This document shows positions 2,651 to 29,300 of a stretch of DNA of 64,000 bases, one piece after another (within the stretch, counting starts at the first letter, position 1; each line of letters opens with the position of its first letter). The notes below the pieces were generated by a model that did no database searches, was not told the origin of the DNA, and worked only from the letters and a program-made list of their open reading frames with translations. The translations under genes and the position numbers were made by a program. The stretch is from Podarcis melisellensis. Its lineage: Eukaryota. The DNA lies in NCBI GenBank assembly GCA_964234715.1, contig OZ174289.1; one strand, 5' to 3'.

Positions 2651-3589
2651 TATTGCATCCTAAGGAAGAAGTTCCCACAGGAGGTAAATAATGCAGTAAG
2701 CACTCCTAGGAAAGTGGATTGAATAGGAACTGGCAAGGCAGGCAGAGCCCATCTACATTCCAGGTTCCAGAGAAGAGATGCAGAAGCCACAAGATGCAAT
2801 TCTACAAGCAAGCACAGACAAATACAGTGTTTTCAGGACCCTGGACAACCTCCCTCACCACTGGTTACCCCACTCATTTGCAAAAAGGAGGGAGTGTCAT
2901 AGTCCTGGGCTGCCAGCCACTGCAGAGTTCAGTGGAGGGAGAAGACAGCCATCCAGCCAAGCTCCAGGGGAGTACTTGCCTGGAGGCAGAGTCCATACAC
3001 AAGGTCCAATTCAATCCTAAAGTCAGGAATATCTCAGTTAATGTAGTCAGATGATCCAGAGGTCAAGAAAGCCAAGTGTCCAAGGTCTCAAGAAGCAGCA
3101 GGGTCTGGCCAGGAACAACGAATGTAGTTTTCAGCAACTGACTGAGGCTGGAAACCCTGCTTAAGAAAGCTGGAGCCAGCTGGTTCTCCTCAGGAGCAAG
3201 AAGGCTGATCAGAAGCAGGTGGAGTCACTTTGCATTCTATTCCTTCAGGCTGCTGCTCAGCAGGTGAAGCTGACACCTGGCCCATGGCAGGGAGCAGTGA
3301 TTGCATAGGGCAGAGGAACCAAATTGCAAAGCCTGCTTAATTAAAACATTTCTTTTTACAAAAGTAAGGGGTTTTCTTTGCAGAGGACTCCTTGCAAATC
3401 TAGTCCAGGGAGCCATGGTGTAGCTACTCCTCCTTTCTTTGCAATAGGAAGTGGGGACTGTTTTCAAGTTAGTATTAGACAGTATTAGACAGGAAAGCTT
3501 GCAAAACCTATATGGTCTTTTCAGGCAAGCTGGGCCACAAGTGTGTGTTTGCATATCATGAATGCAAAGCAATTACTTGTACTTTTTCC

Positions 3590-4050
3590 ACTGGTGCCAA
3601 CGCCAGGTAGCCTTGGGGCCCAAGCACCCACAATTTTTTTCTTGTGAGTGCCTGGCCTCTGCCCCCCCCCCACTGCTGCCACCACCACCTGACCTCCATC
3701 CCCCCAACCATGCACCACCAACATGCACTGCTGCTGCCTCCCAACCTTCGTCTTACCTCTGATGCTCAGCCGCCCCAGTGCTGACTAGACTGGGGCCTGT
3801 GCCTCTGCCATGAGGCCTTTATTGGCTCAGCAGCCATGGACAGAGACTGTGCAGTGGACAGAGATCCCATGGCAGAGGTGCAGGCCCCAGTCCATGCGCC
3901 ACTGCAGCATGCATGCATGCGGCATACTATGCTGGCATCATATCACAGTGATGTGATGTCATGCAATCATGTGACTGCGATGTCATCGTGTCACAGTGTG
4001 GTGTGTGCATGCTTAGCACCCACAGTGGGGGACCCAGGTCAGTATCGCTG
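3590..4050. mobile_element. Degenerate non-autonomous DNA transposon (hAT-like), related to 9927-10414
   Basis: Shares ggggccc..cacccacaattttt, tgatgtca and gcacccacagt..ggcccaag segments with 9927-10414; degenerate TIR-like ends. Confidence 0.45.
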
Positions 4051-4201
4051 ACCTTGTCGGTGGCGTAATGCAATGCTTAGAATCTCTTCTCAGCCCTCAG
4101 ATGCTTGTTTTCCCCTGGGTTTCTCCAGAGATCTTCAGAGTGATTGGGACTGGTCAGGGCATGAACTCCACATCAGGAATAAAGTTTGCCTCCAGAAAAG
4201 A

Positions 4202-4202
<1 letters not shown>

Positions 4203-4284
<82 letters not shown>

Positions 4285-4285
4285 T
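4203..4285. repeat. (TTTC)n microsatellite
   Basis: Direct reading. Confidence 0.98.
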
Positions 4286-5827
4286 TCTCACTGTTTCCAT
4301 GTTCCAAATGCTGCACATTTAAGGCATTGTTGCCACCCATGTAGAAGCCCACGCCAAAACCACTACACATTTCTTATTTAAAAAAGAAAGTCACTAGAAT
4401 GAAAGCAATTTGCCTTTCACCACAAGAATATGCATTAGTAGCTGGTTATTATGTCCGTATTTTAAATAGCTCATTTTCTGCAAATGGGTTGGACCCACAG
4501 AAGCACTGGGGTTCAAGTTCTCCTGAGTCATTCTTTTAAGCCCCGTCCCCCCTCCTTTGCCACCTATTTTCGTTCCCCCTGCCCACAAGCTCCATCCTCC
4601 CACTAATTGAACAAAGTGGACTTAATTTGAATTAAACTGTCAAGAAATCTTCCACTTAAATTGATTTATCTGCTTCTTCAGCTGGAATGGATTCATTTCA
4701 GCACAATGTATAAGAAGCCTGTGTTGATGGATTACATCTCGTGGAATGGAAACATTTTTTAATGCAACTCCATTAAATTCTACTCAGGTATGAAAAGGAA
4801 CAAGAAGAAAGGGAGGATATGAACATGTAGGGAACAGAACATTGGGGGGGGGGGTGTCAGGGGGGAAAAAAGCCTGACAGTATATGAAGAACATTCAGAC
4901 GTAGATTCTCACTGTCAATAAATCATTATTTTTTGATTAGCAAACCCAAGACATCCAGAGCTTCCTTAAATTATTCTCCTCATTTCTAGCATGACTCATA
5001 TGCTTCTAATAAAAGTGATGTCCTCATTATGACCCTCCTAAGTACTTTACCTTATAATGGTGCTGCACTATTTTGCCTTGATCAGACCTCTGGGCACCAT
5101 GGTTTAAGAAGGATATTGACAAACTGGAATGTGTCCAGAAATGGGTGACAAATAGGTGTCTGGAGGGTAAGCTAAAAGATGGAAAATGTTGGTTATGTTT
5201 AACCTGGAGATGAAACCCATGGGAGGTAATACATCAGCCATATTCAAATATTGAAAGGCTGTACCACAGCTGATGAAGAAAATATGCTGCCTGTGGCACC
5301 AAGATATAGGGCCCAAAACAATGGCTTCAAGGTGGGGAGGGGGATTTTGATGAAAAGATAAGATGAACTCCCTCACAGTATGAGGTAGTGTGTGATCAAT
5401 CAACTCCCACCTGGGAACCAATGTCCCCACTGTGGAAGGACGTGTGGGTCCAGAATTGGCCTCCACAGTCACTCACAGACTCATTGTTAAAACCTTGTTT
5501 ATGGAAGACACTCTTACTCGGCTATGAGTGATCACCAAAGAAGAAGAAATGAGGTAGTCTTCACTGGGACATACTATACTTTGAGAAGCTCTGAAGAGGC
5601 TGGATAGTCACCCATCAGTGGCAGATTTCTTGAATCAAAGGGAAGCTGAAATTTGCCATTATGGCTGGGGCTGATAGGAGATGAGTCCAACAATATCTGC
5701 TTGGGCAGAAAAACAAAGCAAAAAAGCTTAACTATCAGTCAAAGACAAAACCTATAAACTAGGGCTCCTCGCAGATGACCAGATGGTCACAACACCAGAC
5801 TCCATAAAGACAGCAATCACTCTAACT

Positions 5828-6282
5828 CAGAGGTTTTCAAACTTTTTGAGTCCATGGCTCCCTTAACCAAGTACATTCTTTCTGTAGCACCCCTGTGGGG
5901 CTCAGGAGCCCAGTTATGTCCCCCTTGCTTGCAGAACTGGCAGCCTCTCGTTCTTTTTGAACACCCTCCCTTGTGGATTGTTGCCTCAGTCTCCTCTCCC
6001 CTCTCCTTGGGAGTCCTCCAGGCAGCTGCTGCTGCTGCCCCTGGTCTCTGAGCTTCACCACCCCAAAGAGAGGTGCCTCCCAGAAGCACCATTCACCTGC
6101 AAAGCTTATGGCCAGGGCTGCTGCAATAAACAGCTGCACAAGCCTTTGGGAGGCAGAGACCTGAGAGGGAATCAGAGAAGGGAGGGAAAGAAAAAAGGAC
6201 AGGGGCCAGTGTTGCCTGTGATACCCCTGATCATCATTTGAGGCACCCCAGGGTGCCCCAGGAAACTGGTTGAAAACCACTG
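5828..6282. mobile_element. hAT-like non-autonomous element
   Basis: Ends CAGAGGTTTTCAAAC...GTTGAAAACCACTG; degenerate 8-bp flanks ctctaact/ccctaacc. Confidence 0.6.
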
Positions 6283-18310: not shown

Positions 18311-18566
18311 TAGACAATGGGTTAGCAACAAGATCAAATGAGGTGGGCTGTGCCTCAATTCCTTCACCAGTACTTTGTATGCAGCAAGTAGGTGTTACTC
18401 AGAGTAGACCAATCAAAATCAATGGACCCAAGTTAGTCATGCCCATTATCTTTAGTGAGTCTACTCTGAATAGGATTAGCAATGAACATAATCCAATGGA
18501 TGAAATCCACTCAAACGCTGAAATCTGAATGGGTCAGTCCAGTGTCCCCAAGCAGCTGGTGACTCA

Positions 18567-18992
18567 TTGCGTGTTGAGTTCCACAGTGCCACCCCCCAAA
18601 TAATTACACACTTCACACATCAATTTTGTTTAAGGTTTTTGGCATAATTTTGGCCACAACTTTTTTATTCAAAATACAAAAATTGTGAGTGGTTGCTTAG
18701 GCATTGGTTATGACTATCTGTCCTGGCCCTCAAGGACAGAGCTGGTTCTTCCGGACTCCCCCAGAAGCCAGCGTGGGAAACAAGTATTGGATGAGAAGCG
18801 AGGCTGGGAAACAGACCCTCGCTTCACACCCTCATGTTCCGGTGGGGCTTGCACGGCCCAAGTCCGGCTCCCCGGACAAGGACGAAAGAATGGCAAGCCC
18901 CTGGATTCCTTTAACGGAATTCCCTTTCCGCATCATTTGGAGGGATAGGCACTTACCCCTCCAAGCACCAATTAACCAATGCCTAACCGCCA
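18567..18992 (-). repeat. Split direct repeat B2 (426 bp, 3' terminus)
   Basis: Copy of 19385-19810; contains AATAAA on the element strand. Confidence 0.95.
18664..18669 (-). terminator. Polyadenylation signal AATAAA in B2 (also in B1 at 19482-19487)
   Basis: AATAAA on the element strand, followed by GU-rich TGATGTGTGAAGTGTGT about 40 nt downstream. Confidence 0.6.
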
Positions 18993-19175
18993 ACCTTACA
19001 AGTTGTGACGATTTGCTACGCAGTAGGCAAAAACCAAATGGCACCAGCCAATCTGCCAGATGGCCAAATTCCTACCGGGCCCCCGCTCCAAGGCGAACGA
19101 CCCCATGACAGGCATAGCAAGGTCAAGCAATCAACTTAAATAACAAACCCCCCTATTAAAGGGAGGGAGGGCGGG

Positions 19176-19387
19176 TGATCCGATGCAAAACGGCCAAGAA
19201 GGACGTCCCTACGTCCGGCTCATCTATTTATATCTTCTGACTCCACCTACAAATTGGTAACTATCAAATTCCCCCAGCAACCCAATTAACCCTTAAGACC
19301 AGGGTTGCTGCTAATTTGCCTAGTCATAGGAGGTCGGCCTGTTCCCCAACCGCAACACGTGCTCTCTGCTAGGGAGAACACGCTTTG
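19176..19387 (-). repeat. Split direct repeat A2 (212 bp)
   Basis: Copy of 26118-26329; abuts B1 with a 3-nt TTG overlap. Confidence 0.95.
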
Positions 19388-19810
19388 CGTGTTGAGTTCC
19401 ACAGTGCCACCCCCCAAATAATTACACACTTCACACATCAATTTTGTTTAAGGTTTTTGGCATAATTTTGGCCACAACTTTTTTATTCAAAATACAAAAA
19501 TTGTGAGTGGTTGCTTAGGCATTGGTTATGACTATCTGTCCTGGCCCTCAAGGACAGAGCTGGTTCTTCCGGACTCCCCCGGAAGCCAGCGTGGGAAACA
19601 AGTATTGGATGAGAAGCGAGGCTGGGAAACAGACCCTCGCTTCACACCCTCATGTTCCGGTGGGGCTTGCACGGCCCAAGTCCGGCTCCCCGGACAAGGA
19701 CGAAAGAATGGCAAGCCCCTGGATTCCTTTAACGGAATTCCCTTTCCGCATCATTTGGAGGGATAGGCACTTACCCCTCCAAGCACCAATTAACCAATGC
19801 CTAACCGCCA
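19385..19810 (-). repeat. Split direct repeat B1 (426 bp)
   Basis: Copy of 18567-18992 at offset 818; one mismatch seen (19581 G vs 18763 A). Confidence 0.95.
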
Positions 19811-19844
19811 TGGAGCCTCCCGCTCACCGCCAAACCACTCACTA

Positions 19845-20330
19845 CCCCGCACCTATCTTAAGCCTCATTCCCTGAAGCAGAAAGGTGCCCGCCATCATCT
19901 CGGAAAAAGGATGGCATCTCAAAAAGAATCGCAGGGTGATTTCACCACCCGCGCCAAGACCTCAGCTTGGCCACCATCGCACCTATCCAAGCTTCATTCC
20001 CTGAAGCAGAAAGGTGCCCGCCATCAACTCGGAAAAAGGATGGCATCTCAAAAAGAATCGCAGGGTGATTTCACCACCCGCGCCAAAACCTCAGCTTGGC
20101 CACCATTGCACCTATCCAAGCTTCATTCCCTGAAGCAGAAAGGTGCCCGCCATCAACTCGGAAAAAGGATGGCATCTCAAAAAGAATCGCAGGGTGAGAA
20201 ATCACCTCACGCACCAAGACTTCAGCTTGGCCACCACCGCACCTATCCAAGCCTCATTTCCTGAAGCAGAAAGGTGCACACCATCAGCTCGGAAAAAGGA
20301 TGGCTTCTTAAAAAGAATCGCAGGGTGGGA
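19845..20330 (-). repeat. Tandem array, ~129-bp unit, ~3.7 copies, derived from the hydrolase 3' end
   Basis: Anchor cctgaagcagaaaggtgc at 19871, 20000, 20129, 20260 (periods 129, 129, 131). Confidence 0.93.
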
Positions 20331-20777
20331 GATCACCTCACCACCCAGCTCACCAATACGAACAGCCACAGCTGAATTGATGCGTTTTCTGGCCCTTTCA
20401 GTGGCCACTGGGCAGCGACTACCTCTCCAAACGCATCGTTGCAAGAGCTGAGACCAAAATATTTTTGCCGCGGGCACCATTGCCCGCAAAGTGTCCAAGT
20501 CCGTTAAAATTGCAGCACGCAGGGCAAAACAGCCCATATCCACCAGGTCATTCTCTCCCAGCTGTATAACAATGGCTGATGGCGGCCCCTCTCGAAGTAA
20601 CTGCCCCCCGGATTCGTGGCAGGAGCTCCGACCAAAGCATTCCACGTCTAGACAACCAGGACAGCTGCACATGGGGAGGAAGGCCGAGACCTAGACCAAT
20701 ACCAGCCTGCCGTGCCGCGACACCAGCCCAATGGACGATGCTGTGCCCCACCATCCACACACGGACCGGTGCCAGAC
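20202..20777 (-). pseudogene. SGNH/GDSL-family hydrolase (~190 aa), interrupted by a 1-nt frameshift
   Basis: Block I VWMVGHS and block II SRRG lie in one frame; block III IVIQLGENDL and block V ADGVHLS lie in the next. The frames join if one G is removed from the G6 run at 20604-20609. Confidence 0.85.
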
Positions 20778-20810
20778 CTGGTACAACATAAACAGACAGA
20801 AAACAACATG

Positions 20811-21781
20811 TTAGCGAACGTAACTTCTGAACGCATTTGACTTCCAACGGCCCAATTCCTTTATCCTGGCCGCTGACAAACCCCAGTGGGCTGCCGTCGT
20901 GGCAGCCCCAATCCGAAATGAATGGGGGGCAAAATCTCCAGCTGTGTCGCCACAAGCCCGAATCACTTTTCGCATCACTCCTGCAAATTGTTGCCTAGAT
21001 AGAGGCAACCCATCCTCGTGCCGAAGCAGAGGCCCATCCCCTTGGGTACGCACGGCCAGGTATTTACTAACGTCTTTCACAGGGCAAGGGCCTGCCTCCC
21101 CCGTGGCAGGGAGACGAATAAGCGCACCCTTACCCTTCTGATCCGTCTTAGAATGCCTAATCGTGATCCTCAATTCGTTAGGGGATAACTGAATGTCTTG
21201 GAGGAAGAGGCCCCAAGAGCGACCATCCCGATGATCCTCCACAACCAATTCACCCACTCTCAACGCACCAAAAAAGGCTATGGAAAAGGCAGCCGAGAAT
21301 AGGCGTGCCTCATACGCTGACCAACATACCACCCGCAGCTTTTTTCGCATATTGCTCAGCAAGTCAAAAGAGATGGGGCGCCTAGATACCGGCCGGTGAG
21401 GACACAACCTGCCCCAGCCCTCAAGGGCCTTGCGGACAATAAATTTCGCGCAAGGATCCTTATCATAAAATGTTTTGCAGAAAAATGAGATGGCCGCTGC
21501 TTGCATCCTAATTGTCTTCCCTGCCCGCCCCAATTGAAACAATTGTGCCAAGTACTCTAAGACCTGCGAAGGGGTGGGTAGGGCCCCCTTTACTCTGCTG
21601 GTAGACTGAGACACAAATGTCATAAATTTTTCCCAAACTTTTGTATAAGATCGCAGAGTAGAAGGGGAAACCGATGCTGCTACTCCCTGCAAAACTAATT
21701 GTTGCCAAGGTTCCAGAGATGATCCGGGAAATATTCCGGAAGTATCCGTGCCTCTGGAACCAGGAGTCTGAATCGCTCCAT
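20811..21781 (-). CDS. Tyrosine recombinase (YR)
   Basis: Catalytic set present: ALRVGEL (R), HSKTDQ (K), HSFRIGAA (HxxR), GRWKS (W), SYVR (Y). The frame stays open upstream of the track's TTG start, overlapping the RNase H end. No ATG near the start; the start given is the predicted splice acceptor. Confidence 0.93.
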
Positions 21782-23446
21782 CTGAAAACGGGACAGAGCA
21801 TCAGCAATTTCGTTAGACACCCCAGGAATAAAACGAGCAGAAAAAACTATATTACAACGCAAATAGTGCAACACAAACGTTCGCAAGAGGGCCGACACCC
21901 GAGGGGAGCGTGACGACAGCTTGGCTAGCACCGTCACCACCACCTGGTTGTCAGTCCAGAAGCAGACACGACGGTTCCTGAACTCCTCGACCCACAAATG
22001 CACTGCCACTGCAATGGGAAAAAACTCGAGAAAAGTTAGGTCCCGCGTAATCTCTCCTCCCCTCCATTCATGCGGCCAACGCTTTGCGCACCAACGGCCC
22101 TTCCAATACAGACCAAAACCCAGCGAACCCGCAGCATCCGACTGCACCTGGAAGTCGTTGTGCAAATTTAACGTGTCTTGCCACAACGAAACCCCGTTGA
22201 ATTCCTCCAGGAATTCCAACCACATGGACAGATCAGCCCTCACCTCATTAGAAAGTCGCACCCGATGGTGAGGCGCCTTCAAACCTACTGTAAGGCGAGC
22301 CACGCGAGAACAGAAAGGGCGCCCCGGAGCCACCACTTTACAAGCGAAATTAAGATGTCCCAAAAGCGACTGAAGTTGTCTAAGAGACACTTTCCGCAAA
22401 GGTAACACTTCCTCTATAATCTTTTTTAAGGCAACCAGCTTATCACTTGGCAAGCTAGAGGTTTGAGCCACCGTATCTAAAAGAATACCCAAGTAAGTTA
22501 GCTGGGTCGAAGGACCTTCAGTCTTGTCTGCGGCAAGGGGAACCCCAAGTTCCCGCGTAATGTCAGCAAACGCACTCAGGAGCAATAAGCAATCGCCTGT
22601 ATCAGCCGCAGAGGCCAGTAAAAAATCATCCAAATAATGAGTGACTCCGCCCCTTCCTGTCTTAGATTTAAGGGCCCATTCTAAAAATGTGCTAAAAGAT
22701 TCAAAAGCCGCACATGCGATTGAGCACCCCATGGGCATAGCTTTATCAAAGTAGAAATTGCCCTCAAACTGAAAACCCAGAAGCCAAAAATCCTCCGGAT
22801 GAATTGGCAAAAGGCGAAAGGCCGATTCAATGTCACATTTTGCCAATAAAGCGGCTTGCCCGAATTTCCGAATCATCCTGATCGCCTGATCAAGAGAAGC
22901 ATACTTTACGGAGCATAGCTCAGGAGGAATCACATCATTAACTGACGTACCCTTGGGATGTGACAAATTATGAATTAGACGAAATTCACCAGGGGCCTTT
23001 TTTGGCACGATACCCAAAGGGGATATGTGCAAATTATTAAACGGAGGGTCACTAAAAGGACCAGCCATGCGTCGCATGGCCACCTCTTTTTCAATCTTCT
23101 TACGGGCAACCTGAGGTAGCTCGCGAACTGATTTTTGGTTAGCAGGATTACGTGCCACGGGAGACGTGGCTACTGGAATCCGGAAACCAATTGAAAAACC
23201 ATTACTCAAATAACATGCGGCCTCCCTATTAGGGTAAGATCTCAGCCAATTTTGCAATACCTGCAGGCGAACAGGTGTAAAAGCCAATGAAGTCAACGCA
23301 TCATTTTCCTGGTCCCGGGGTCGAGGCGGGGAGAGCTGCCTTGGGGGTTTGCTGAGAACCCCCTTTTCCCCCGCAAAAGGGCCGCCGACCCACAAAACAA
23401 GAGGAAGCTGGGTGCAAACCATTACACTTATCACACATGTGAGCAA
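21695..23446 (-). CDS. pol: Reverse transcriptase-RNase H ORF2 (~580 aa), overlapping the gag 3' end in the +1 frame
   Basis: RT motifs ISPLGIVPKK, FRLIHNLS, AKCDIESAFR, MPMG, YLDDFL. RNase H motifs SDA, LEFFPI, TDN, NEIADALSR. No internal stops; true start uncertain. Confidence 0.95.
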   Translation of the reverse strand: MLTCVISVMVCTQLPLVLWVGGPFAGEKGVLSKPPRQLSPPRPRDQENDALTSLAFTPVRLQVLQNWLRSYPNREAACYLSNGFSIGFRIPVATSPVARNPANQKSVRELPQVARKKIEKEVAMRRMAGPFSDPPFNNLHISPLGIVPKKAPGEFRLIHNLSHPKGTSVNDVIPPELCSVKYASLDQAIRMIRKFGQAALLAKCDIESAFRLLPIHPEDFWLLGFQFEGNFYFDKAMPMGCSIACAAFESFSTFLEWALKSKTGRGGVTHYLDDFLLASAADTGDCLLLLSAFADITRELGVPLAADKTEGPSTQLTYLGILLDTVAQTSSLPSDKLVALKKIIEEVLPLRKVSLRQLQSLLGHLNFACKVVAPGRPFCSRVARLTVGLKAPHHRVRLSNEVRADLSMWLEFLEEFNGVSLWQDTLNLHNDFQVQSDAAGSLGFGLYWKGRWCAKRWPHEWRGGEITRDLTFLEFFPIAVAVHLWVEEFRNRRVCFWTDNQVVVTVLAKLSSRSPRVSALLRTFVLHYLRCNIVFSARFIPGVSNEIADALSRFQMERFRLLVPEARILPEYFPDHLWNLGNN

Positions 23447-24824
23447 ATTTGCACCCTTGACGTTGACATGAACCCTTGTTAAATTCCCAGCATAACAGGC
23501 GACGGCTGGTTTTAAAGGCCCCTGGTCTCATCCTCTGTTGTTCCGGCCCCTTTTTATCAATGGATGGGGCCACGTAAGTGGTCCAAACATCAAGATCTTT
23601 TCGATCCCATCGGGCCGAGGGAATCTTAGCAGCCCTGCGCCTAAAGTTCTCATCGTATTTTATCGCGGCTTTTTCACCAGCTTTGGTGAAAGCGGAGCGA
23701 ACAATAGATAAATAAATTAACAAATGAAGAGATCTACGCGGATAAGCCGCCATGACCACTCCAGCAAAAACTTGGAAACAATCTAACCAATGCTCGAATG
23801 TCCTGTCTGCATTGGACACACCAGAGCGCTTCCTCGAAGAGCTCACCCTCTCTTGTTCATCTGAAGGAGGGGCCAACTTAAACAAGTCAACATAACGGCC
23901 ATCTAAAATCCTAGAACGCAGCTTTGTCGACAAATGTGAACCAGGAATGACATCCCTGGCGGAATTGGTAGAGACCTTAACGTCAGGTACCAAGACGCCA
24001 TCCTTACATTCCTGTACTGCCCCATACCTTGCCCGGTGTGTGTTGGACCTACGTTCCCAAGCCCACCTTGGAAGTCCTGATGCCTCTTCTCCATGGCCCC
24101 AGTACAGCTCCAAGGCACTACCTGACTCACCATCGGAACTAGAAGAAGACATACCAGAATAAGAAGACGACGATTCGTCCCTCCTGCGTTTTGCATGCCT
24201 CCGCGAAGATCTCTTGCGGCGCCGCTTTCCGCCTGAAGACCTTCTGGCAGGCACTGGCAGGCTATCTTCAATGGAGGATTCGGAGTCAGGATCCTGCCGT
24301 GAAGGACCTGGGACTGATGGAGAAGAGACAACACGTGAAAGACCAGAAACCTGTGCTTCCTCAACCTGAGGCTGGGCACGCTCGCTACGGCGAGTAGCAG
24401 GTGCTGCACGGTTCCCCCGTCTTGAGGCCCTCCGTGAGGAATGACCCGATCTTCTGGAAGAAACACGAGTAGGAGGTAGGTGAGGAGACTGGGTTGGCTG
24501 GGGATTAACCCTTGAGCCCCCAGATGATGATCCCTCTCTCCCATTCTCACTAGATGATGACACCAATGGAGACGACGCCCCCACTGGAGGAGGCGGTCTC
24601 GCTGACGTGGAAGGCTGACTGGAACACTGCTGAAGAAAGCCGTCCATTTCAGCCACAAAGCGAGATAAAGCTGCTGGGTCACCGGCCATGCTCGATACCA
24701 GAGACTGCATCCGTCCCTTCGGTTGACTATGAGGAGCTGAACGCAGAGCCTGAGATGGGCCTCTGATCGGCCGTTTTGCCGAGGTCGATGAGCCAGGGCG
24801 AGCCGCAGCCTTCTTTGGAGCCAT
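23301..24824 (-). CDS. gag: Gag-like ORF1 (507 aa)
   Basis: ATG-initiated 507-aa ORF upstream of RT. Ser/Arg-rich N-half with basic KRRRKR cluster. C-terminal Cys/His finger CWEFNKGSCQRQGCKFAHMCDKCNGLHPASSC. Confidence 0.88.
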   Translation of the reverse strand: MAPKKAAARPGSSTSAKRPIRGPSQALRSAPHSQPKGRMQSLVSSMAGDPAALSRFVAEMDGFLQQCSSQPSTSARPPPPVGASSPLVSSSSENGREGSSSGGSRVNPQPTQSPHLPPTRVSSRRSGHSSRRASRRGNRAAPATRRSERAQPQVEEAQVSGLSRVVSSPSVPGPSRQDPDSESSIEDSLPVPARRSSGGKRRRKRSSRRHAKRRRDESSSSYSGMSSSSSDGESGSALELYWGHGEEASGLPRWAWERRSNTHRARYGAVQECKDGVLVPDVKVSTNSARDVIPGSHLSTKLRSRILDGRYVDLFKLAPPSDEQERVSSSRKRSGVSNADRTFEHWLDCFQVFAGVVMAAYPRRSLHLLIYLSIVRSAFTKAGEKAAIKYDENFRRRAAKIPSARWDRKDLDVWTTYVAPSIDKKGPEQQRMRPGAFKTSRRLLCWEFNKGSCQRQGCKFAHMCDKCNGLHPASSCFVGRRPFCGGKGGSQQTPKAALPASTPGPGK

Positions 24825-25047
24825 ACCTACTTGTGAGAATTAGAATAAAATAAAATAAAATAAAATAAATAAAATTAACCAATTTAGTTAAAAGTAAATT
24901 AAATTAAATTTAAAGAATTAAATTAAATCAAAGTAATGAAATCGCCAGGAAGCAAAATGCGATAACACGAATAAGCTGGAAATAAAATTCAAAGCAACAA
25001 CAAAAAATATTAAAATGTTTGAGAATGTGAGGTTATAGCCAAGGCAG

Positions 25048-25164
25048 CCAGCAGGGGGTGCCAGCCAGCCCAAAATCCAAGCAGGGTGCAACGCTGCCCT
25101 GAGCCACCAGGGGGAGCCTGCCCACACCAAGCTGCAATAGCTCCCTCCTGCCGCTAGAGGGCGA
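25048..25164 (+). promoter_or_regulatory. Three tandem CTCF-like motifs
   Basis: CCAGCAGGGGGTGC (25048), CCACCAGGGGGAGC (25104), CCGCTAGAGGGCGA (25151). The last two are preceded by TGCAA 17-18 bp upstream. Confidence 0.6.
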
Positions 25165-25249
25165 CAGCCAAAGGAAATAACCAGGATGACTCAGGGCTAA
25201 ATGAATAAAATGGAGGGCCCCCAGTGAATTATGGAGCAATTTAATACAG

Positions 25250-25950
25250 CCACCCAGGCCGAGGGCTGCAGGCCCGCGTAGGCCGCGAAAGGCTGCCGCG
25301 TCCTGCAGGCAACGCCTACTCCTCCAAAATACCCCCGCGCAAGGGGGGAAGGCCCTTGGAGCGCGAAATAAATTTTTTAGGGGCAGGGGATGGTGGGAGG
25401 ATGGCGGAAACCCCCCCCAACGGGGAGCCCGCGACCGCCGGGCCCAAGGCGGAGCCGCCGCCTGCCCGCGGCCGCTAATCCCCGATTCCAAAGGAAGCCC
25501 AGGCACCAAACAGTAAGGCGGACGGGGGGGCGCTGCGGCAGCGCCGCCGGCCACCGACGCGAGGCCTCAGCTCCTCACCCGGGTAGGCTCTGCTTGGTGA
25601 AGCAGGCCGATGGGGAGAGAGCGCCTCCCCGCCGCCCAGGCCACCGGCAGATGGGGGGGCTCGGCCGCGCCCCGCTACGGCCGCGTCCGCGGCTAGGCCC
25701 CGCCTGGGAGAAGCGTGCCGGTGAGGAGGGGGCGCCTCCCTGCCGCCCGGGCCGCCGGCGGATGGGGGGGGGCTCGGCCGCGCTCCGCTACGGCAGCGCT
25801 GCCGGCCACCGGCACAAGGCCTCTGCCCTTCCCCCGTCTAGGATCCGCCTGAGAAGCGGGCCGCCGAAAAGCGGGGAGGGGAAAAAAAAACGAACCGGGG
25901 GGGCGAAGCCTCCCCTGGCTGGGGGGGGTATCCCACCCTCAGCCAAACAC
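25250..25950. other. CpG-island-like GC-rich 5' leader of the retrotransposon with imperfect internal duplications
   Basis: Very high GC/CpG. Imperfect repeats 25621~25733 (gcgcctccc...gctacgg) and 25537~25791 (ggcagcgc..gccggccaccg). Confidence 0.75.
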
Positions 25951-26117
25951 CGGGACCAAACCAACACAAATAAACAAGGAAGGAAGATAAAGGTAATGGG
26001 AATTGCAGAATGGAAGAAGGGAAGGGAAGGAGAAGCTGAACGGGGGAAAAGGAAAAGGGGTAGAAATTAAGATATTCAGATTAAGGTCAATACAACCGTC
26101 TCCAAATAGCAGCTCCT

Positions 26118-26329
26118 TGATCCGATGCAAAACGGCCAAGAAGGACGTCCCTACGTCCGGCTCATCTATTTATATCTTCTGACTCCACCTACAAATTGGT
26201 AACTATCAAATTCCCCCAGCAACCCAATTAACCCTTAAGACCAGGGTTGCTGCTAATTTGCCTAGTCATAGGAGGTCGGCCTGTTCCCCAACCGCAACAC
26301 GTGCTCTCTGCTAGGGAGAACACGCTTTG
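26118..26329 (-). repeat. Split direct repeat A1 (212 bp, 5' terminus)
   Basis: Identical by eye to 19176-19387. Confidence 0.95.
26167..26199 (-). promoter_or_regulatory. Putative Pol II promoter in A1 (CCAAT + TATAAATA)
   Basis: On the element strand: CCAAT at 26199-26195 and TATAAATA at 26174-26167, followed by a pyrimidine-rich Inr-like CCTTCTT about 25-30 nt downstream. Confidence 0.6.
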
Positions 26330-29300
26330 TGTGTTTGTATTGCACTGAGACATATCACCAATGTCATATCTGCTGTCAGCCCCAAAGCCTTACTTTTCAG
26401 CTCTTGTTAAACATTTGCAAGCCATCACATCCCCTCTCCATCTCAACACATACCGGTATCTGTTTCTGACTAGCCTTTTCATAACTCTTCCACTCCTAAG
26501 TCCTTTCCAGTTTTGTTAGCATTCTCCCTAGACCACAACAAACAGGACTAAGCTCAGTAATCTAGATGTGGCTGTGCCAGTGGAATTTATCCCTTTGCTG
26601 CCGATTCAACAACTGGGCGTCAATTTTATTATAATGTTTGTTTAGGATTTTATTTTTAATTGCATATGCTTTTACATCATGTTTAAGCAATCTCATGGCT
26701 CTCATGGGTAGAAATATGGATGCAAATGGCTTCAATAAATAAATGACATCTAGTACTGCCTGCAAGTCATAACACCAGTCAGTGCCTGCCTCCAACCACT
26801 CCCCTCATTATATATATTTCATTGTTTTAAATGCTATAGTTTCTGAGAAAAAGCTGCGGACACTCTAGCTGCAAGCAGTAAATCATCCAGTCCTTTTCTC
26901 CTGGATGTGTGCTGAGGAAGGGAAGCTGATGATGAATGGGGCTGTCCGTATTTACATTGAGAGCGAAACAGCTGTGAGAATCTCCCCGCACCACGAGTAT
27001 CCCTTGCAAACACCCCCCTTTCTTTCCCTCTCCGCTACTGCTTGCTGACAGTGATGGATTGTCTACTTCTGTGCAGATATACCCAGTTGCATAAACTCCC
27101 TACCAATGCTTGATATGATTGGGAACAAATTCCATTCCTTCTGGGTGCCATGGAATTCTTTTAGAAGATACTGGTATATGCCATGGCTTGGGCAACAAAG
27201 GCTAGAACATAGGAAGCTGCTTTATACTAAGTCAGACAACTGGTCCACCTAGCTTTGTATTGCCTGCACTGACTGGCAGGGTTACAGGCAGGGGACACTG
27301 CCAGCCCTACTTTAAGATGCCAGGGATGGAACCTGAGACCTTCTTGCAAAACAAACACTCTACCACCAAGCCATCGCTGCTCCCCTAACTAAGATTCTGA
27401 TCCTCATGGTTCTGAATAAAGGACTGATTGAAATAAAAACATACGACAGAGGTGCCAAATACCGTCAGACCATTTTCATCTAGCCCAATATTTTCTGCAA
27501 TAATTGGCAGTGGCTCCCCATGATTTCAAACATGGGACATCCTTAGCTCTGCCTGGAGATTCTGTGAATTGAAGCTGGGACCTTCTGCACTCAAAGCAGG
27601 TGCTCCACCACTGAGCTATGGCCCTTCCCTAAGACAAATATGGCAACCCTAACATAGAGCAGTCAAGTCCAACATTCCTTGTTTTCCTAGAATGGATGCA
27701 CAGAGGAATGTGGCTCCAAACTTCCTGTCATACCTGTTGGGAGCCACCTCTCCCTGAGTGTGACCAGGTAGCTGGGCATGACTCAAGTAAAGCCTTAATA
27801 AAAGGGTTGTGCACACAGTCATCTTCCTCGCTTGCTCTCTTGCTCCTTTTGGATATATTGATCCTGCTGTTCATATGCAGCCTCATCCATAACAAAGGAT
27901 GTAGGCAGGGGCGTAGGAACAATAACAAAAAATAACAATACACAAAACACAAAAACGCGCATGCAAAAAACCCCCACAAATCCAATTCTTACAAGTTAAT
28001 AATATAAACACTAAAAAGAAAAACGAACATTGACTTCCACCAATCCCACAGCACCTCCTTTACCTCTCATTGTATCTTCCTGTATTCCTTATCATCTCTA
28101 TCCTAACATCTAGATATAAATCCCTCTTTCTTATCCTTTCACTTCACAAGGTTCTTCCAGACTCAGCCAGATTTAAAAAGATTGCCTTATCTTATTATTA
28201 TTTTCAGCGGGAAATAAAAGGGAAATTACCAGGAAGAACCCATAATTACCAGGAAGAATCCCGGATTGCTTAATTAGAAGGTTGACACAAGCCATCAAGA
28301 GTTTCCTGCTACTATTTGCTGCAAGGAATGTGCTCTGCTCTATGTGCTTACTAACATGAATGAGGAAGGGTTATATATAATTAATAGATCTCTAATCTTC
28401 CTCAACATTCCTACAAGATCCCCTTTAATCAGCTTGATTCAATTTGAAAATATAGCTTTAATTGAATCTGGGCCACAGCCCTAATATTCATGGTTCTTGC
28501 CCTCCCTGTTCATCACACTATGCACTCTTCCATGTATCCCAAAGGAAGGTTGTATATAAATGGATTGGTGGATGGATTGAAAGAATGGCTGCTAAGTGTA
28601 TAACAGTACCCCAACTCTATCAGATGTAGGGCTTAATCTCTTTTACTGTGTGTATTTTAAAGCCCACCCTCCCTCTAAATGGGGTTTTGAGCACTAATTA
28701 CATCAAAGGCAAGAAGGGGATTTAACAAGGTCACCTTAGCCAACAAGTATGTGGGGGGAGGGAAAGCAGAGATAGCACTGGCTCTGATCAGAGTCATGGG
28801 AAGCTAGGAGAAGGCCCTAGCAAGTTTTGATAACCCAAACATGGTTAGGATAGAATCTGCAACCCCCTCAAAGAGGATCAAATATCCCATCAGTTAGGAC
28901 ATTTTATATCCTTCTGAGGAGAGAATTGGGTGAGATGCTTGAAGTCAATCAACCCTACCAACCTCAATTTCATGACTGTCTTTGGGGGTGCTTGAACATT
29001 CTTGACATCTCTAAGTCTTCTCCTCTGCCTTCAGAATTCAACCTTCCTTGCTTCTGTTGTCACTGTTTCTTTGAAAATACAATCTCCTGCGCTCCTCCAT
29101 CATTCCTCTCTCTTCATTGTTTCCCTTCTTGTCTCCATTCTTTCTCCATTTCATGAAACCGTTGACATCTTGTTTACCTCTGATGTCGAAATAAAGAAAT
29201 TTCATTTCTGAAGCACATTTTCTTCTGCTGTCAATGTAGCTGGGGAGGTGGGGGAAACAAGATATGATGCTTCAAAGGCACCAATCAACTTAAAAACAGC

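Follow-up and report, generated by a model that had tools for sequence, protein, structure and literature searches.

The Ngaro group of the order DIRS includes amphibian families, namely DIRS-53_XT as well as DIRS-54_XT, that carry an open reading frame (ORF) for an SGNH hydrolase (PMC9210276). In these families, the gag, reverse transcriptase/RNase H (RT/RH), tyrosine recombinase (YR) and SGNH ORFs overlap, the split repeats are ordered A1...B1-A2-B2 and there is no methyltransferase (PMC9210276). The element considered here lies in a stretch of 64,000 nucleotides (nt) from the lizard Podarcis melisellensis (contig OZ174289.1; the whole stretch is hereafter called the window) and is organized likewise. 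It is a full-length Ngaro-type YR retrotransposon, located at 18562..26335 on the minus strand, as are all the features of the window given below, and recognized by its direct repeats and ORF content. Whereas the published descriptions of Ngaro elements consulted list overlapping ORFs and no expression mechanism, a shared splice donor and two acceptors can be defined in the element of the window. The expression of the overlapping and often ATG-less downstream ORFs of DIRS and Ngaro elements is left open in the literature found, and splicing would offer an answer. The literature searched does not mention that Ngaro or DIRS elements are natively spliced, the original 2004 Ngaro description being outside its coverage and an earlier mention being possible.

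Alternative splicing of a donor located within gag to an acceptor ahead of either YR or the hydrolase probably expresses these two ATG-less ORFs (probability of about 0.8). One long element RNA would serve both as genome and as Gag mRNA. The host spliceosome would splice a fraction of this RNA from the mid-gag phase-1 donor at 24155 (or from a second site at 24131), either to 21781, with 84 nt of the RNase H coding sequence still to come, or to 20777, in a short spacer at the YR stop codon. This would lead to two subgenomic mRNAs starting at the gag ATG, one for Gag(1-223)-YR and the other for Gag(1-223)-SGNH hydrolase. As such spliced mRNAs borrow the gag ATG, the YR and hydrolase ORFs could be translated without start codons of their own. 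It should be emphasized that the direct support comes from related elements sharing 45-78% identity with the window copy rather than from this copy itself, and we infer that the latter splices as its relatives do.

Public gene models provide a first set of arguments. A search with the first 231 residues of the window gag protein, whose matches were placed on the window by tblastn, returned plain gag proteins of 505-510 amino acids (aa), a class of P. muralis proteins of 413-416 aa and one protein of 499 aa. The 413-416 aa class consists of the N-terminal half of Gag (to near 24174) followed by the hydrolase from window position 20778, while the 499-aa protein consists of the same half followed by YR from position 21785. 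When proteins were mapped to their own loci by prefix and suffix matching with a check of the split codon, all the mapped models showed two exons, a GT-AG intron of phase 1 and a first exon spanning 586-721 nt. A YR acceptor identical to that of the window is used in P0031 (locus L001 of P. muralis; exon 1 of 667 nt, donor CAG/GTACGT, acceptor ...CGTTTTCAG/AT in the stretch that encodes the RNase H motif ADALSRFQ; slashes mark exon boundaries), in P0050 (L006 of P. raffonei; 721 nt, CAG/GTACCT), in P0072 (L005 of Xenopus laevis; 700 nt, TTG/GTAACT, same RNase H site) and in P0051. The homologous hydrolase acceptor is used in P0008 (L002 of P. muralis; 670 nt, CTG/GTACGT), P0044 (L008 of P. muralis; 706 nt, CAG/GTACGT), P0042 (L010 of P. 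raffonei; 538 nt counted from an internal ATG, CCG/GTACGT), P0043 and about 15 further models.

P0051 and P0043 are the isoforms X1 (533 aa) and X2 (397 aa) of a single gene of Zootoca vivipara, LOC118082278 (L004; exon 1 of 622 nt). Both leave from one common donor, X1 reaching the YR acceptor and X2 the hydrolase acceptor. As annotated, this gene is the proposed alternative-splicing circuit. The join between Gag and hydrolase recurs in the P. lilfordi protein P0035, which comes from a separate annotation effort. Furthermore, in an exhaustive HMMER search with the hydrolase part, 30 cluster representatives were found to have a C-terminal hydrolase preceded by 150 aa or more of N-terminal extension. 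Those looked up show the fusion architecture in the annotations of Anolis sagrei (isoforms X2-X4), Elgaria, Rhineura, Hemicordylus, Eublepharis, Sphaerodactylus, Zootoca and the caecilian Rhinatrema.

One more representative comes from the Logan contig SRR6291285_43862 (L011:449-1633; 1677 nt), which carries a contiguous and intron-less ORF of 394 aa made of a Gag-like N-terminus and a hydrolase. It would be a direct spliced transcript if the library is RNA.

Another argument requires no gene predictor and comes from a family related to, although not the same as, that of the window. The locus L007 (P. muralis OZ076957.1, about 11.10 Mb; 3001-4563) holds a single uninterrupted ORF of 520 codons that encodes the Gag N-half followed by YR (protein P0063). 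Over residues 1-209, P0063 aligns with gag of L004 and of L008 as far as the donor codons, and the residues from 210 onwards align with the YR-frame ORFs of the same two elements from the acceptor codon. The junction, ...TCAG/ATGAAC..., corresponds to the end of exon 1 (...TCAG) and the start of exon 2 (ATGGAC...) of L004 and L006. L007 is devoid of the gag C-half and of RT/RH, and keeps a decayed hydrolase remnant (4404-5143) and 3' repeats, its B repeats (5230-5345 and 5850-5969) being about 94% alike. Because of this exact exon-exon join, of the lack of RT/RH and of the retention of the 3' repeats, L007 appears to be an old retrotransposed copy of a spliced Gag-YR RNA. To judge from this piece of genomic DNA, such a spliced RNA must have existed in relatives of the window element and must have been reverse-transcribed. 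An earlier sequence-only reading of the window had predicted that splicing joins the Gag N-half in frame to YR or to the hydrolase. This join is reproduced exactly by the two-exon GT-AG models on homologous elements and, as far as YR is concerned, by the L007 junction.

The sites and their phase are conserved beyond the models that use them. Seven elements, belonging to lizards and two frogs, have the donor and both acceptors in phase 1, even at sites not used by any model. For instance, the only annotated model of L005, L006 and L009 is of the Gag-YR type, and their hydrolase tract and YAG are still in phase 1; conversely, L002 and L008 have only a Gag-hydrolase model, and their YR acceptor is in phase 1 as well. 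Overall, the CAG of the YR acceptor is found in seven of eight elements, and the pyrimidine tract and YAG of the hydrolase acceptor are in phase 1 in all seven (7/7). The GGTA of the donor is invariant across seven lizard elements (alignment A3), the upstream flank varying between families, and in L002 the used donor is followed 33 nt downstream by another donor of phase 1. The YR frame opens only 19-31 nt upstream of the acceptor in the six elements whose YR acceptor is that of ADALSRFQ. The hydrolase exon always starts 8-14 aa ahead of the GHS nucleophile motif, and Met is entirely missing ahead of GHS in four of the seven hydrolase ORFs. L009 from Mixophyes fleayi (5906-6001) has no AG at the usual acceptor, since its motif reads ADALSRFH (CAC), and in its model, P0068 (exon 1 of 586 nt, donor TCG/GTGAGT), the acceptor is a different one, also in phase and located 72 nt further downstream. 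The conservation in related copies proposed as a check by the sequence-only reading is thus seen for the donor GGTA, the YR CAG (7/8) and the phase, while the CTAAC varies.

In the window, the shared coding exon 1 (24155..24824) encodes the Gag N-half, i.e., 223 codons plus one base; its length, 670 nt, is that of exon 1 of P0008 on L002. Donor 1, CTG/GTATGT (24149..24157, last exon base 24155), is in phase 1, lies 670 nt after the ATG and is homologous to the donor of the public models. Donor 2, ATG/GTGAGT (24125..24133, last exon base 24131), also in phase 1, sits 24 nt downstream, 694 nt after the ATG. The latter is the sole 8/9 match to MAG/GTRAGT among the 372 GT sites of the element, and the former, a 7/9 match, is one of fifteen such sites. 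The YR 3' splice site (21782..21816) includes CTAAC (21816-21812), a pyrimidine tract and CAG (21784-21782), and lies within the codons for ADALSRFQ. The YR exon that follows (20811..21781) comprises two bases, 322 codons and TAA, and its frame opens just 19 nt upstream of the acceptor. The hydrolase 3' splice site (20778..20814) includes CTAAC (20814-20810), which overlaps the YR stop codon TAA (20813-20811), a T-rich tract and CAG (20780-20778). Read from this acceptor, the hydrolase exon (20548..20777) has 75 codons, including GHS, and then a stop (20550-20548). Both donors leave one base of a codon and both acceptors supply two, in the frames of YR and of the N-terminal part of the hydrolase. 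A GT-AG intron of compatible phase that joins two ORFs is found in the window and in eight related elements.

All the motifs listed by the sequence-only reading are present at their coordinates, and the four sites are in phase 1 in their target frames. Its description of both acceptors as textbook 3' splice sites holds for CTAAC and CAG, present at each of them, and less well for the hydrolase tract, which has only 14 pyrimidines out of 20. Its claim that neither ORF has a usable ATG is close to correct: in the YR frame, an ATG first occurs at 21623, within the conserved N-domain, and in the hydrolase frame, the single ATG ahead of the nucleophile (20754) lies inside the first strand. By themselves, the motifs of the window are suggestive and not beyond chance.

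The Gag-YR protein predicted from the window copy looks intact and would have 546 aa (donor 1) or 554 aa (donor 2), in line with the size of about 550 aa initially proposed. The size of about 420 aa proposed for Gag-hydrolase does not apply to this copy. Its hydrolase shifts frame between 20690 and 20551, whereas related proteins stay in one frame, and due to this shift, the predicted fusion stops at about 299 aa; the length in intact relatives is 413-416 aa. The window exons were examined separately, and the fusion proteins used in the comparisons are public proteins. For example, the AlphaFold2 model of P0008 shows helices at residues 36-68 (predicted local distance difference test score of about 80), a disordered region at 70-223 and a confident SGNH domain. 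The junction (residue 224) is placed four residues before the first SGNH strand, which starts at residue 228. Among PDB structures, the best matches of the hydrolase model are sialate O-acetylesterase and TesA, 4c1b being also among the matches, with 12-20% identity. At the level of this predicted model, the SGNH fold of the hydrolase is confirmed in P0008. The shared Gag N-half, made of a short hairpin of helices, a long linker that is disordered and rich in Ser/Arg, and a basic cluster, could plausibly provide both enzymes with nuclear import or, through the hairpin, with co-assembly with Gag.

Splicing could also be real and nevertheless be a by-product, or a loss imposed by the host, the fusions having no role and YR and the hydrolase being made by other means. 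This is rather improbable. It would be expected from the splicing of long GC-poor RNA at cryptic sites, which can occur in the vertebrate nucleus, and from the further joins annotated into the same acceptors; moreover, L007 is a decaying retrocopy, as the catalytic histidine of the HxxR motif of its YR has been replaced and its C-terminus is truncated. However, a mere by-product would hardly account for a phase 1 kept at the donor and at both acceptors while exon 1 varies between 586 and 721 nt, nor for stops of the YR frame just upstream of the acceptor, nor for an exon boundary that is a domain boundary. The hydrolase has no conserved start codon, and the loss of CAG in Mixophyes (RFH) goes with the use of another in-phase acceptor 72 nt downstream.

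It is even less probable that the motifs occur by chance and were joined by predictors that maximise ORFs, the ORFs being actually translated by frameshifting, reinitiation or non-AUG starts. L007, which is genomic DNA with an exact exon-exon join, involves no prediction, one Zootoca gene has two isoforms with a common donor, and acceptors unused by any model are still in phase. It is true that G/GT donors easily arise from Gly codons, as illustrated by the 15 sites out of 372 scoring 7/9, and that all the ORFs overlap, which frameshifting would lead one to expect, with YR read at -1 relative to RT and the hydrolase at -1 relative to YR. There is also a TTG at 21692, where other families carry an ATG, and a GGGTTTG in frame within the YR/hydrolase overlap. 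Nevertheless, no X XXY YYZ slippery heptamer for -1 frameshifting was found in the zero frame in the RT/YR overlap (21810..21690). Lastly, domestication of the fusions from Ngaro as host genes, suggested by their annotation as ordinary LOC genes and by the single-exon ORF of L007 adjoining a host gene, is very improbable, as the models sit on full-length multi-copy elements with the gag C-half and RT/RH in the "intron", many paralogous loci occur per genome and L007 has lost catalytic residues.

Several points weigh against the expression of YR and the hydrolase by alternative splicing, or at least limit its extent. The CTAAC at the YR acceptor is not conserved, other families having ATAAC, ATAAT or CCAAT. 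The conservation of this acceptor is confounded, since the site encodes a conserved RNase H motif. Splicing may not be universal, as the YR ORF begins with an ATG in certain Ngaro families (Lacerta, Eublepharis). As for the public models, some of them may rest on protein alignments to earlier models and would therefore not be fully independent of one another. In the same annotation, donors located inside RT and inside YR are also joined to these acceptors, and not every annotated model need be real. The inspected Logan contigs with hydrolase or YR are unspliced (e.g., P0037 on L003). No joint from 24155 or 24131 to 21781 or 20777 was found in three DNA-like contig sets, which are uninformative on RNA; the joints present in these sets have sides of 20-50 nt and are not GT-AG, the contigs being short and the family multi-copy.

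The repeats and ORFs of the window element place it in the Ngaro group. Its split direct repeats, A1 (26335-26118), B1 (19679-19380), A2 (19393-19176) and B2 (18861-18562), follow the order A1 ... B1 A2 B2 expected of Ngaro. A1 and A2 (218 nt) are 100% identical and B1 and B2 (300 nt) are 99% identical; this lizard Ngaro copy is young. It is colinear with the P. muralis element L002, with which it shares 78% nucleotide identity. The Pfam scan matched only RVT_1, Phage_integrase and Lipase_GDSL and thus revealed no methyltransferase domain. With YR, RT/RNase H, split repeats and an SGNH hydrolase after YR in the absence of a methyltransferase, the element belongs to Ngaro (order DIRS).

The gag ORF (23301..24824, ATG at 24824) encodes 507 aa and matches gag proteins of 505-510 aa from Podarcis and Zootoca. 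It includes a basic cluster at aa 198-217 (24233-24174), immediately ahead of the donor, and a CCCH-type knuckle in its C-half at aa 445-462 (23492-23439). Just before its ATG, AAGTAG is found at 24832-24827. A pyrimidine- or AT-rich tract and an AG directly ahead of the gag ATG occur only in the subfamily of the window (24827-24860 in the window; L001, L002 and L010). Several models of 369-370 aa begin at the second in-frame ATG, although the first one is intact in L010. Together, this tract with its AG and these second-ATG starts hint at a candidate leader intron or at a downstream transcription start. No gene model supports a leader acceptor before the gag ATG. Further upstream, about 987 nt of GC-rich leader (25119-26105) are missing from contigs of related copies, which show a joint from 25118 to 26106 that is not GT-AG; because of this, the segment seems to be variable or inserted in the window copy.

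The RT/RNase H open frame (21695..23527; PF00078, E 2e-13) lies in the +1 frame with respect to gag. It possesses an ATG at 23422 and contains the RNase H motif ADALSRFQ. Apart from its final 84 nt, it lies entirely within both introns. In the RT frame, no third in-phase acceptor that would give a Gag-RT/RH fusion was found near its start, and no model joining the Gag N-half to RT appeared among the matches of the Gag N-half search. A -1 frameshift from gag to RT at G GGA AAA (23370, gag frame) was considered and rejected, as the slip does not enter the RT frame.

The YR frame, defined by frame analysis, is open at 21800..20814 and is -1 relative to RT. Its match to PF00589 (E 2.4e-5, 24.6 bits) is below the Pfam cutoff of 27.1. 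The window YR shares 35-68% identity with proteins annotated as "integrase/recombinase xerD homolog" and with Ngaro YR proteins, and it displays the YR motifs RVGE, SKTDQ, HSFRIGAAT and RSY. A consensus donor, AAGG/GTAAGG, also lies inside YR at 21140-21128 (last exon base 21134) and is in phase 1. P0034 and P0040 join its homologue to the hydrolase acceptor, from internal Met residues; such joins could reflect either a minor splice form or an artefact of annotation.

The first part of the SGNH hydrolase, which includes the GHS nucleophile motif, is open at 20994..20551, as defined by frame analysis. The remainder, with the GxND and DGVH blocks, is located in a different frame at 20202..20690 (PF13472, E 7e-5). 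In the hydrolase alignments, the S, G, N, D and H columns are invariant (A2, A4). A 129-nt unit present in four tandem copies at 19860-20377 re-copies C-terminal hydrolase codons, with 67-100% identity to the reference copy.

If splicing operates as proposed, it has several consequences. With a defined donor and two acceptors, the expression question becomes directly testable. The model would account for dozens of unexplained "uncharacterized protein" isoforms in reptile and amphibian annotations and predicts that both the recombinase and the enigmatic SGNH esterase function with a Gag tag. Copies devoid of the intron, like L007, would be a genomic marker of past splicing and a possible route to RT-less and non-autonomous Ngaro derivatives.

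The presence of 4c1b among the matches of the P0008 model indicates that SGNH esterases were taken up by two unrelated classes of retrotransposons. This structure is that of the ORF1 esterase of ZfL2-1, a zebrafish long interspersed nuclear element (LINE), and the SGNH match is shared with the hydrolase part of P0008. However, the esterase is part of ORF1 in ZfL2-1, whereas the Ngaro hydrolase would be a separately spliced exon.

Subgenomic splicing itself is known in other retroelements. In retroviruses, one major 5' splice site is joined to alternative 3' splice sites. For example, the env mRNA of avian leukosis/sarcoma virus takes its ATG and first codons from gag, and foamy viruses make Pol from a spliced mRNA. 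The proposed Ngaro circuit is alike in that the genomic RNA would be the Gag mRNA, a donor in or near gag would be joined to alternative acceptors and the downstream protein would borrow the gag start. It differs in that about 223 Gag codons would be fused, and not a handful, and in that splicing would give access to a tyrosine recombinase and an esterase, not to Env or accessory genes, RT/RH being intronic. Furthermore, Ngaro belongs to a class unrelated to the elements with long terminal repeats (LTR) and an integrase.

Spliced RNAs are also known from other retroelements, such as the gag mRNA of copia, the env mRNA of gypsy or the intron of Ogre. In the same way, rice tungro bacilliform virus produces ORF IV by splicing a leader ORF to it in frame. 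In these LTR elements and pararetroviruses, as proposed for Ngaro, the host spliceosome gives access to internal ORFs, and the in-frame fusion of rice tungro bacilliform virus likewise supplies a start codon. However, Ngaro belongs to a different order, and two alternative in-phase acceptors would share one N-terminal module. What would be new here is not subgenomic splicing of a retroelement but its occurrence in a YR retrotransposon whose fusions share a large Gag module; retroviruses and LTR elements would not be alone in making spliced subgenomic mRNAs that borrow a Gag N-terminus. Tetrapod Ngaro elements may well have independently evolved a retrovirus-like "complex" expression, in which one gag donor and alternative in-phase acceptors would place a common Gag module on both enzymes, and in which spliced RNAs carrying the terminal repeats would have been retrotransposed, seeding RT-less copies such as L007.

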